Source: Dendrobates tinctorius (Eukaryota). Taken from it: DNA of 64,000 nucleotides. The DNA is taken from positions 14,880,001 to 14,944,000 of the forward strand of contig NW_027361825.1 in NCBI RefSeq assembly GCF_039654945.1. Reading direction: 5' to 3'. The notes under the pieces are model-generated. The model was not told the DNA's origin. It saw only the letters and a program-made list of their open reading frames with translations, and did not search any database. The translations under genes were made by a program, and so were the position numbers. Shown one piece after another: positions 9,234 through 18,157 of this stretch (its first letter is position 1; each line of letters starts with the position of its first letter).

Positions 9234-10845
9234 CAGTGCCTAATAATCTAAATGTTCCCTTCAACCAAGAGTGCATTAGAAGAGATTCTTCTCTGTAGGC
9301 ATTTACTTTTTCCTCTGAACTACACTACCGAATCATAAAAAGGCAGAATCGTACAGGGGGGGAAAAAACACCATTTTTTTCAGTGTGATGTGGTAATACT
9401 TATGTGGCTAACCATCTCACACTGAGATCTCTTTACATCCGATGCTTGATAACATTACAAGTGCCAAGAGGAGAGCTGTATGCCATTACACACAATGCTA
9501 TGGATATATCCCAGACATTGAGGAATAATGTGCTGATACCAGGAATAGATTTATGCTACATGCTGCTCGCACACTACAGCACTCCTCTGCCGACACTGTC
9601 ATGTCATTCATAATCTAATGACTTGACAGTGATGTGAGAGGAGAGCTGCAGTGGTGATCAGTTTGCCACAAACAACATTCTGGATATATTTAAGTTATCA
9701 GGACATTATTCCCCGATATCTGGGATAGAGTCACAGTGTAGTTTGCAGCAGAGCTCTCCTCTTTTTCTGGTGCTTGTAATGTCAGTACATGTTCCAGGAG
9801 TGAGGAGATCCCAGTGTGATAACGTTAGACACATCATTCTCATCACATGACACTGAAAAAGCCAGTTCTGACATTCTCTGGGGGTGTTTTATTTTCCATC
9901 TGTATGATGCTGCCTTTTTATGATTAGGCAATGAAATACAGTGGAGAAAGTAAATTTTACTAGCCAATATCTGTACAAAAGAGAAAAGATATATAAAAAA
10001 TAAAATCTATGCTTTATTCAGTTCTTCAATCACTTTATCATAAGGTACAATCCTACACCACAAGTAAATTCTACTAATAAAAATACCCCCTTTTTCTTAG
10101 TTAAAAATAAAGAAAGGAAAAAAAAACATATTTGGTATTCAGATCTACAAAATATCAAACTAATTTTTATGGTAACCACTGTAAAGAGCAGTTGAATTGC
10201 ATTTGACCTATATATAAAAAGACAATAAAATGTCAAAATCTTGAATGTCCCTCAATTTAATATCAATAAAAAGAAGCGCTAACACAGTTCCACCAACAGA
10301 AAAATAAAAATGTTACAACTTACGAATTTTGTAAAATGAATAAAAAAATGTTATTTTTACAAAATCTGATTTTCTTCATCACTTAAAAAGAAAAAAATCA
10401 ACATAAATTTGGTATCCCCATAACCACACTGACCTAAAAAAAATAAATCATGTTTTAAGATCATTCTTACAGCACAATAAATGTAAAAACAAAGCAAAAA
10501 ATTGCTTTAATTCATCCCACTTGGAATTTTTTTTTCCATTTTCATAGTACATTATAGGGCAAAATGAATGGTGTCATTCAAAACTACAGCTTGTCCCACA
10601 ATAAAACAAGCCCTAAAATGTTTAAGTCGAAGTAAAAATAGAAAAGTTATTGCTCCTGGAAGAAAAAGAGGGAAAAAAACAAAAGTGCAAATATGAAAAA
10701 AAAATCATTAACATTAAAGGGTTAATAACACCTTACAAGGGGATTTCTGTTGTTTATTAAGAATATCCTTACATCTGAATATTTACTCATCTTTAAAAAA
10801 AATGTATGGACAGAGATTAGTTGCAACATCTAGCACAGACAAGCT

Positions 10846-10985
10846 CTTTCAGTTTCTTTTCCTGAGAGTCGTTAGGATCCATCAGCTGCTTTTATGTTCT
10901 TGGGTGAACAATAATTGACTTGTAAACCATAAACTGGGAGTGATCAGAATTCAGGAAATAGAAACTTAATGAAGTTGACTATAAA
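10846..10985 (+). promoter_or_regulatory. Candidate interferon-responsive promoter of APOBEC paralogue 2: two ISRE/IRF elements plus TATA box
   Basis: CTTTCAGTTTCTTTTCC at 10846-10862 (reverse GGAAAAGAAACTGAAAG), GGAAATAGAAACT at 10954-10966 and TATAAA at 10980-10985, followed by a CAG|GTCAGT donor at 11129. Confidence 0.6.
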
Positions 10986-11009
10986 CCTGACCCAAAGACT
11001 GGAATGTAC

Positions 11010-11129
11010 TCACCCAACAAAGGATGTTCTGCATCGTTACTAGACAAACCCGTCTCTAACTATCAAAGCGTGGATGATTTCCATCCAAGAAGTCAGACCA
11101 GAAGAACACTGGAAAGTTGAACACATCAG
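11010..11129 (+). other. Putative non-coding first exon of APOBEC paralogue 2
   Basis: Starts about 25-30 bp after the TATA box and ends at donor CAG|GTCAGT. The matching acceptor tttttaAG at 12915 precedes the catalytic exon. Transcription start is inferred. Confidence 0.45.
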
Positions 11130-11679
11130 GTCAGTACGTCCCCAGTCAGCATATGGATATGTCTAACCTAACATCATTATGCCTAAATTACAAACATGTA
11201 CCTAAATTTACATAAGATAATGCGATCTACATTTTTTAGACATGTCACAGATGAAAAGTAAAACTTGGTATGATTCATGATTCTTCCTACTGTCTGCACG
11301 TAGATGTGGGAAAACTTTGAGTGACTCTGCCAAAATGAAAACCATACAGTAACATTGTTGCATAGCTGGAAAAAAAAAAAGCAAAAAAGAAATAAAAAGA
11401 TGTTCCTAATTTCAGCCCCAAATCACACAAAGTTGATCCAGAGGAAGGCAACCCTTCCCATGAGGATAAAGACAATTTTCCACATCTTAGGAAAAAATTG
11501 ATCTCCGAGTCCAAAAAGTGCAATCAAAATAAACCCCTGATTCAACAGCTCATCTCCAGACATTTCATAACCATAAGTTGTAATATTATAATTTGCCACA
11601 ATCCTATCTACACCATGATGTCACAGATGGAAAAAAAAAGTCTAGGATAAATTCTAACAAATTTAGATTTTTGATGTGC

Positions 11680-12790
11680 GTTAATTTGTGAAAAAAACAG
11701 AAATTTGGCAAAAATTTTGAAACTTTTATTTTTTACCACATACCACATGTCTACTTTACATCAGCACATCTTTTGAAATATAATAATTTTTTTTTGCTAG
11801 GACGTTATAAGGGTTAAAATTTGACCAGCGATTTCTCATTTTTACAGCTAAATTTGAAAAACCATCTTTTTAGGGACCACCTCACCTTTGAAGTAACTCT
11901 GAGTGGCCTATATGACAGAATATACCCAAAAATGACACCATTCTAAAAACTGCACCCCTCAAGCTACTCAATACCACATTCAAGAAGTTTATTAACCTTT
12001 CAGGTGCTTCACAGGAATTCTTGGAATGTGGAAGGAAAAAATAAACATTTCTTTCACAAAAATTATATTTTAGACATATTTTTTTTTAATTTTGCAAGGG
12101 AAACAGGAGAAAATGGACCACACCATTTGTTGTGCAATTTCTCCTAAGCATGGGGATACCCCATATTTGGGGGAAATCTACTATTTGGGCACACAGCAGG
12201 GCTTGGAAGGGAAGGAGCGCCATTTGACGTTTTGAATGTAAAATTTGCTGGAATAATTAGCGGACGTCATGCCATATTTGGAGAGCCCCTGATGTACCTA
12301 AACAGTGATAACCCCCAATAGGTGCCACCATTTTGGAAACTACACCCCTTAGGGAACTTATCTTGATGTGTATTGAGCATCTTGAACCCACAGATGCTTA
12401 ACAGAAGTTTATAACCTTAAGCCTTGAAAATAAAAAAAAATCAAATATTTTCCACCAAAATCTTTTTTAACTCCAAATTTTGTATTTTCACAAGGGTAAC
12501 AGGAGAAAATAGACCCCAAAATTTGTTGTGAAGTTTCTCCTGAGTGCACCGATAGCCCATATGTCATCGAAAACTGCTTTCGAGGCACAGTGCAAAGCTC
12601 ATAAGGGAAGTAGCGCCATATTACAGTGCAGATTTTGCTGCACTTGTTTGAGGGTGCCATGTTACATTTGCAGAGCCCCTGAGGTGCCAACACAACAGAA
12701 TCCCTCAAATGTGACCCCATTTTACAAACTAAACCTCTCATCTAGGAGTGCAGTGGTACCACAAGTGTGTCACATACTTTTATACCATAC
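11680..12790. mobile_element. Degenerate fragment of the TTAA/CCCTT-ended satellite-bearing non-autonomous element
   Basis: Homologous to 24150-24950 (CATTCTAAAAACTGCACCCCT, GGAGCGCCATTTGAC, GATGTACCTAAACAGTG). Confidence 0.65.
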
Positions 12791-12942
12791 AGAGATGGGA
12801 TATGCTTGTAGCAAATTTTCAGTTATGAGAAGCATTTGTCACGTTTGTGTTATCAGTCTCTTTCTGGATCTGTAAAATTTTCCAATGCGATGTTTAATTT
12901 ATTTATGTTTTTAAGCCTTTGAATTGCGCTCTTTCCACCAAT

Positions 12943-18157
<5,215 letters not shown>

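Follow-up and report, generated by a model that had tools for sequence, protein, structure and literature searches.

A deeply conserved IRF/ISRE-type element in the non-coding first exon may place a frog-specific AID/APOBEC-like deaminase gene under interferon control

The window (the whole 64,000-nt stretch of Dendrobates tinctorius DNA analyzed here) contains an AID/APOBEC-like deaminase gene, and a 17-bp block in its first exon resembles the elements through which IRF factors and interferon act. The non-coding exon 1 of this frog-specific gene, whose product is of the Pfam NAD1 type, begins upstream of ~10805 and carries within its first 30-185 nt, on the antisense strand, the 17-bp element GGAAA-N-GAAACT-GAAAG, a putative IRF/ISGF3-type response element in which an ISRE overlaps an IRF-E. 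All the frog lineages sampled, Ascaphus and the poison frogs among them, have kept this element in place and in orientation. IRF factors (ISGF3 after interferon; IRF1/3/7 after virus sensing) would bind it beside the start site and raise transcription, by which the deaminase would become interferon- or virus-responsive. In this lineage, an A-rich stretch 92 nt downstream has turned into a perfect ISRE by two substitutions and may add a second site. On balance, and with modest confidence, we believe that an IRF/ISGF3-type element near the start makes the deaminase responsive to interferon or virus, factor binding and inducibility being predictions. The function of the ISRE has been preserved between fish and mammals, and ISGs such as MX1 are induced by the interferons of frogs; as for the induction of frog APOBEC-like genes, our literature search found only the baseline expression of Xenopus apobec2.

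All the motifs named in a previous reading made from the letters of the window (hereafter the sequence-only reading) were confirmed at their coordinates, both by direct reading and by regular-expression searches (Table 1). Over the distal block (10846-10862) the plus strand reads CTTTCAGTTTCTTTTCC, the reverse complement being GGAAAAGAAACTGAAAG, and the proximal site is GGAAATAGAAACT at 10954-10966 of the plus strand, or AGGAAATAGAAACT when counted from 10953. The pattern GAAAN(1-2)GAAAC[TC] is found twice in the window, both times inside one 120-bp interval, which also holds the only triple GAAA. The statement that these motifs lie in sequence with no recognisable repeat also holds, as 10800-11200 is unique in the window and in the loci compared, save for orthologous and paralogous positions. 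Contig depth over this segment is 0-5, compared with thousands for the intronic repeats. With no extra copies and such a low depth, an origin of the promoter from a transposable element or other repeat was ruled out.

Table 1. Features of the deaminase locus, in window coordinates.
Feature	Positions	Strand	Remarks
Non-coding exon 1	10785..11129	+	5' end at or upstream of ~10805-10785; from contigs
A-rich TATA-like box TTTAAAAAAAA	10792..10802	+	candidate core-promoter element, ~50 nt upstream of the distal block
Distal block, ISRE/IRF-E-like, deeply conserved GGAAAAGAAACTGAAAG	10846..10862	-	invariant core AA-NN-GAAACT-GAAAG
Proximal site, consensus ISRE AGGAAATAGAAACT	10953..10966	+	lineage-specific, within exon 1
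TATAAA	10980..10985	+	conserved only in dendrobatid paralogue 2; inside observed transcripts
Upstream ORF, 38 codons	11004..11120	+	probable; stop codon TGA at 11118-11120; the R. imitator and P. terribilis models continue into exon 2
Intron 1	11130..12915	+	GT..AG; 3' half is a dispersed/tandem repeat family
Exon 2	12916..13324	+	27 nt of leader, CDS from ATG 12943, catalytic HAE...SPCNNC
Last coding exon segment, to stop	18051..18157	+	junction 13324/18051 placed by the GT-AG rule

The distal block was found upstream of the orthologous gene in R. imitator, P. terribilis, Rhinoderma, Bufo, Pyxicephalus, Rhinophrynus, and Ascaphus, at a distance of 5.8 kb in Rhinophrynus and 1.2 kb in Ascaphus, where the flanks are otherwise unalignable. 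The pattern AANNGAAACTGAAA occurs exactly once per locus in seven loci (183 kb in total), always in minus orientation and always upstream of the deaminase CDS, against 0.06 occurrences expected in shuffles. In Pyxicephalus the block is located 231 nt ahead of the exon-1 donor and is the sole match in 21.8 kb; furthermore, it is also present in ranoid mRNA contigs. In the six-sequence alignment it forms the best-conserved 17 columns, 14 of them invariant compared with 10 of 17 at the splice donor. The spacer position is free (A, G, C, or T) while the GAAACT, GAAAG, and GAAA cores are fixed, and in the mRNA of one species (L010) the third repeat is degraded. All these data support the presence at this promoter of an ISRE/IRF-type element under long-term constraint.

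When compared to the ISRE sequence (A/G)NGAAANNGAAACT, the proximal site is an exact match, and so is the distal block of ranoids (GAAATGGAAACT), which reads GAAATGGAAACTGAAAG and carries one extra base that gives the canonical ISRE spacing. In the window and in the other frogs the distal block fits this sequence with a GGAA first half-site or with a 1-nt spacer and, because most frogs have one or the other, it is not a strict GAAANNGAAACT. The EMSA probe for the human ISG15 ISRE, employed in IRF and ISGF3 gel shifts, is GATCGGAAAGGGAAACCGAAACTGAAGCC (PMC2677155), and the frog distal block has the same ...GAAACTGAA... core after a GGAAA-type half-site as this human element (...GGGAAACCGAAACTGAAG...). 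In most frogs, however, the first two half-sites stand one base closer together, and the frog element is antisense in orientation and follows the transcription start. The conserved element fits what would be expected of an IRF- or interferon-controlled gene, and control of the deaminase gene by interferon seems likely from these comparisons, which make the gene a candidate for interferon or IRF regulation with unusually good phylogenetic footprint support.

The distal block could alternatively be a constitutive, cell-type-specific IRF site, either an ETS-IRF composite bound by PU.1 and IRF4/IRF8 or a site for IRF1/IRF2/BLIMP-1, in which case the gene would be expressed in myeloid or B cells and would not be induced by interferon. 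In fact, the window has the ETS-IRF composite pattern GGAANNGAAA, as do P. terribilis, Rhinoderma, Rhinophrynus, and Ascaphus, and the kinship of the protein to AID makes a lymphoid setting conceivable. However, Bufo (GTAAACGAAA) and the ranoid form lack a GGAA at the required distance, GAAACT-GAAAG does not vary, and sites of the ISGF3/IRF9 type typically have a constant CT behind GAAA, for which reasons we consider this alternative unlikely, if worth keeping in mind. More improbable is that the block is a pyrimidine-rich motif of the 5'-UTR (CUUUCAGUUUCNUUUCC) acting at the mRNA level, where it would bind a protein and control translation or stability, its likeness to an ISRE being coincidental. 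This would agree with its presence in transcripts from three lineages and with its strand, which never changes, as well as with a long leader containing seven upstream ATGs, but it does not account for the pattern of fixed and free positions, which is that of GAAA repeats with free spacers, nor for the single-base insertion of ranoids, which falls exactly where the canonical ISRE spacing is restored. Moreover, prediction of a consensus RNA structure for the block and its surroundings gave 0 pairs and hence no conserved pairing. A function of the block as a splice acceptor (TTTCAG/) was also discarded, as mRNA contigs are collinear with the genome across it.

The transcribed region was examined in sequencing runs made up of contigs of unknown condition, whose label as RNA is a guess and which give no start sites, strand, or expression level; we take them as RNA because of the splice junctions within them. 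The splice from 11129 to 12916 anticipated by the sequence-only reading (donor CAG/GTCAGT at the exon end, acceptor AG/CC at the start of exon 2) is real, since the two exons are joined in a contig of a related frog and the R. imitator and P. terribilis models of NCBI have this junction as well. This 410-nt contig (run X21, record 17) covers 10876-11130 and continues unbroken into 12917-13075. A second contig of the same organism, from another study (run X25, record 24; 368 nt), covers 10805-11130 with ~20 extra letters at each end, which bin depth places at ~10785 and in exon 2. Exon 1 consequently measures 325 nt or more, its start being no further downstream than ~10805. Both contigs cover the TATAAA and the proximal ISRE, and that of run X25 covers the distal element too. 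In addition, transcript contigs of two other frogs have leaders of 398-495 nt that are collinear with this region and contain the distal block. In three lineages, then, the transcript contigs have their 5' ends 27-185 nt ahead of the block, and transcription must begin 30-185 nt or more upstream of it.

These contigs bear directly on the start near 11010 that had been proposed from the TATAAA at 10980. Such an inducible internal promoter, with both ISRE-like sites upstream of its start, would be in line with the presence of the TATAAA in three dendrobatids, and contigs are unable to reveal starts or proportions. Nevertheless, the spliced contigs of the relative, coming from two studies, extend back to 10876 in one case and to 10805 or beyond in the other, both running on into exon 2, and the mRNAs of other frogs include the distal block. 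Furthermore, translation in the NCBI CDS models starts at the counterpart of the ATG at 11004, so the model mRNAs must begin upstream of it. The TATAAA, moreover, is missing in paralogue 1, Rhinoderma, and Bufo. The start near 11010 is not that of the observed transcripts, although there may be a minor internal start, and we regard an alternative inducible promoter at this position as improbable.

In several of the frogs aligned, an A-rich or TATA-like box precedes the distal block by ~40-75 nt. In one ranoid, three out of four contigs begin 32-45 nt after a TATAAAA, and Ascaphus has TATAAATA 38 nt before the distal block. This box is a candidate core-promoter element only, as other contigs (one from a relative, L006, and L010) extend past it. 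In R. imitator, the 48 bp equivalent to ~10753-10800, A-rich box included, are absent, and the equivalent of window positions 10200-10800 is present in two copies upstream of the gene (L001:869-1326 and L001:5330-5800). The contigs of run X1, which match the window at ~98.5% identity, are unspliced at 11109-11332 and 12711-13400, where they read straight through the donor of exon 1 and through both the acceptor and the donor of exon 2, and represent either pre-mRNA or DNA in a run that is only guessed to be RNA.

The proximal site has a different history. In a three-dendrobatid alignment its equivalents are GGAAATAAAAAAT in R. imitator and GGAAAGAAAAAAT in P. terribilis, both of which have AAAAAT where the window has GAAACT, and the site was not found in paralogue 1, Rhinoderma, Bufo, or any other frog compared. 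It was created by two substitutions beside a 7-bp insertion, specific to this lineage, and from this distribution we interpret it as a recent gain or a product of chance. Thus, of the double ISRE put forward by the sequence-only reading, the distal IRF/ISRE-type element is conserved, being kept in eight frog loci, while the proximal consensus ISRE is lineage-specific, lies inside the transcript and is absent from the orthologous loci, an absence that this reading had named as evidence against itself. Its identification of the proximal sequence with the human IFITM1 (9-27) ISRE proved correct: AGGAAATAGAAACT is quoted for human IFITM1 (PMC3424830), and the frog site at 10953-10966 is the identical 14-mer. 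IFITM ISREs are located just 5' of the start codons, near or inside the leader (PMC3424830). The identity between both sites is a matter of convergence or chance and not of homology, because even the other two poison frogs compared lack the frog site.

Chance is a live option for this proximal site. The strict ISRE GAAANNGAAACT occurs once in the 64 kb, both strands considered, against an expected 0.25, and 23 of 100 shuffles contained at least one, so that a single occurrence per 64 kb is, taken alone, within chance; besides, the precursor seen in the relatives is an A-run two substitutions away. That all these motifs are functionless products of A-rich sequence is, on the other hand, very improbable, as the recurrence of the distal block in all eight frog loci examined, against 0.06 expected, excludes chance for it. 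The string GGAAACGAAACC, a putative human OAS1 ISRE, was looked for in one candidate paper and not found there, and none of the comparisons made here rests on it.

The sequence-only reading had also suggested looking for the same motifs upstream of paralogue 1, whose promoter is located beyond the window edge and was read in P. terribilis instead. In this species paralogue 1 has a homologous promoter and exon 1 (L003:7634-7930), which keeps GGAAAGGAAACT, with AAAAG as the third repeat and CTTTAAA in place of TATAAA. The paralogue 1 protein of P. terribilis shows FQAEE at its catalytic site, with Gln for the zinc-ligand His.

If its start is near 10785, the leader (10785-11129 plus 12916-12942) contains seven upstream ATGs with short ORFs, which hints at a translational control of the deaminase. 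Part of exon 1 has been modeled as coding in other species: the NCBI models of R. imitator and P. terribilis, each of 213 aa, take 51 N-terminal residues from the equivalent of 11004-11129, in frame to 12916, as both frogs have TCA at the position of the TGA found in the window and their models read into exon 2. Compared by eye, these 51-aa extensions differ between both species at one-quarter to one-third of their positions, for an exon 1 nucleotide identity of ~88%, and the proteins of the other frogs start at the MI(L/P)MPP methionine. This loose divergence at such a nucleotide identity, together with the TGA present here, led us to reject a protein-coding role of exon 1, and 11004-11120 is probably an upstream ORF and not real coding sequence.

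With respect to the coding part, a contig of run X2 (record 16) matches 13079-13324 with zero differences, and joining 13324 to 18051 yields ...QIDFRW..., as in the homologues. The predicted protein is a compact single domain of 162 aa with the zinc motif H-x-E plus P-C-x2-C (HAE...SPCNNC). NAD1 (PF18778) is the top Pfam family for the window exon and for six frog homologues, by a margin of 3-18 bits over the next family, an assignment made by profile score. NAD1 scores were 86-123 bits versus 52-74 bits for APOBEC3, and the APOBEC3 profile fell below NAD1, APOBEC2, APOBEC_N, and SNAD4 for every protein scanned; by profile score, the protein is not an APOBEC3. Single-sequence and profile searches returned homologues from frogs only (Ranitomeya, Phyllobates, Rhinoderma, Bufo, Leptodactylus, and Pyxicephalus, and also Spea, Pelodytes, Leptobrachium, Rhinophrynus, and Ascaphus), the next match being mammalian APOBEC1 (E 7e-13), and a word-indexed profile search gave no relatives outside frogs.

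NAD1 has been described from fish to marsupials and NAD2 in amphibians only (Krishnan et al. 2018, PMC5889660). Although NAD1 is the top match for the frog proteins, a set of matches restricted to frogs suits the phyletic pattern of NAD2 better than that of NAD1, as judged from profile searches. An antiviral role of NAD1 was inferred from its high sequence variability, interferon being unmentioned there, and APOBEC3 arose from AID in eutherians (PMC5889660). Both mammalian APOBEC3 and the frog protein are zinc-dependent cytidine deaminases of the AID/APOBEC superfamily with an IRF/ISRE-type promoter element (predicted in the frog), and both loci have tandem paralogues. The frog protein differs in that it scores best on NAD1 and is a single domain of 162 aa.

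Interferon-induced DNA/RNA deaminases acting as antiviral effectors are known mainly through the APOBEC3 proteins of placental mammals. A conserved IRF/ISRE element on a frog-specific relative offers a concrete and cheap test for an analogous defence in amphibians, a declining animal group, and bears on the control of ranavirus and retroelements in them. In its working, the arrangement described here would resemble a classical ISG promoter, and interferon-induced APOBEC3 provides a fair analogy; that the frog gene is a functional APOBEC3 analogue, as the sequence-only reading had it, is something we only infer. In a broader sense, it is tempting to propose that, already before Ascaphus diverged from the other frogs, a frog-restricted deaminase was wired to IRF/interferon by a single fixed promoter-proximal element, giving an interferon-stimulated mutator arm independent of APOBEC3, and that the second ISRE is recent in one poison-frog lineage; we advance this tentatively, with rather less than even confidence. 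An ancient, fixed response element beside a newborn consensus copy would also be a small natural example of ISRE turnover.

Several observations concern the surroundings of the gene. Upstream of the promoter, 10501-10601 had contig depths of 85-458 in all four runs and is therefore a fragment of a dispersed, transcribed repeat. The family found in the 3' half of intron 1 has a period of ~390 bp and occurs at 11600-12800 and at 19.3-19.9, 24.1-27.5, 56.1, and 58.6-59.2 kb, with a long tandem array at 24-27.5 kb adjoining an N gap and contig depths in the thousands in all four runs. A search for genes between 3700 and 10800 gave two short ORFs only, and a second catalytic exon was looked for in the window and not found. 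In Phyllobates, Rhinoderma, Bufo, and Pyxicephalus (loci L002, L004, L005, and L014) a gene with an MABP domain lies tail-to-tail downstream of the deaminase, and in Rhinoderma and Pyxicephalus olfactory-receptor genes are located upstream of it.
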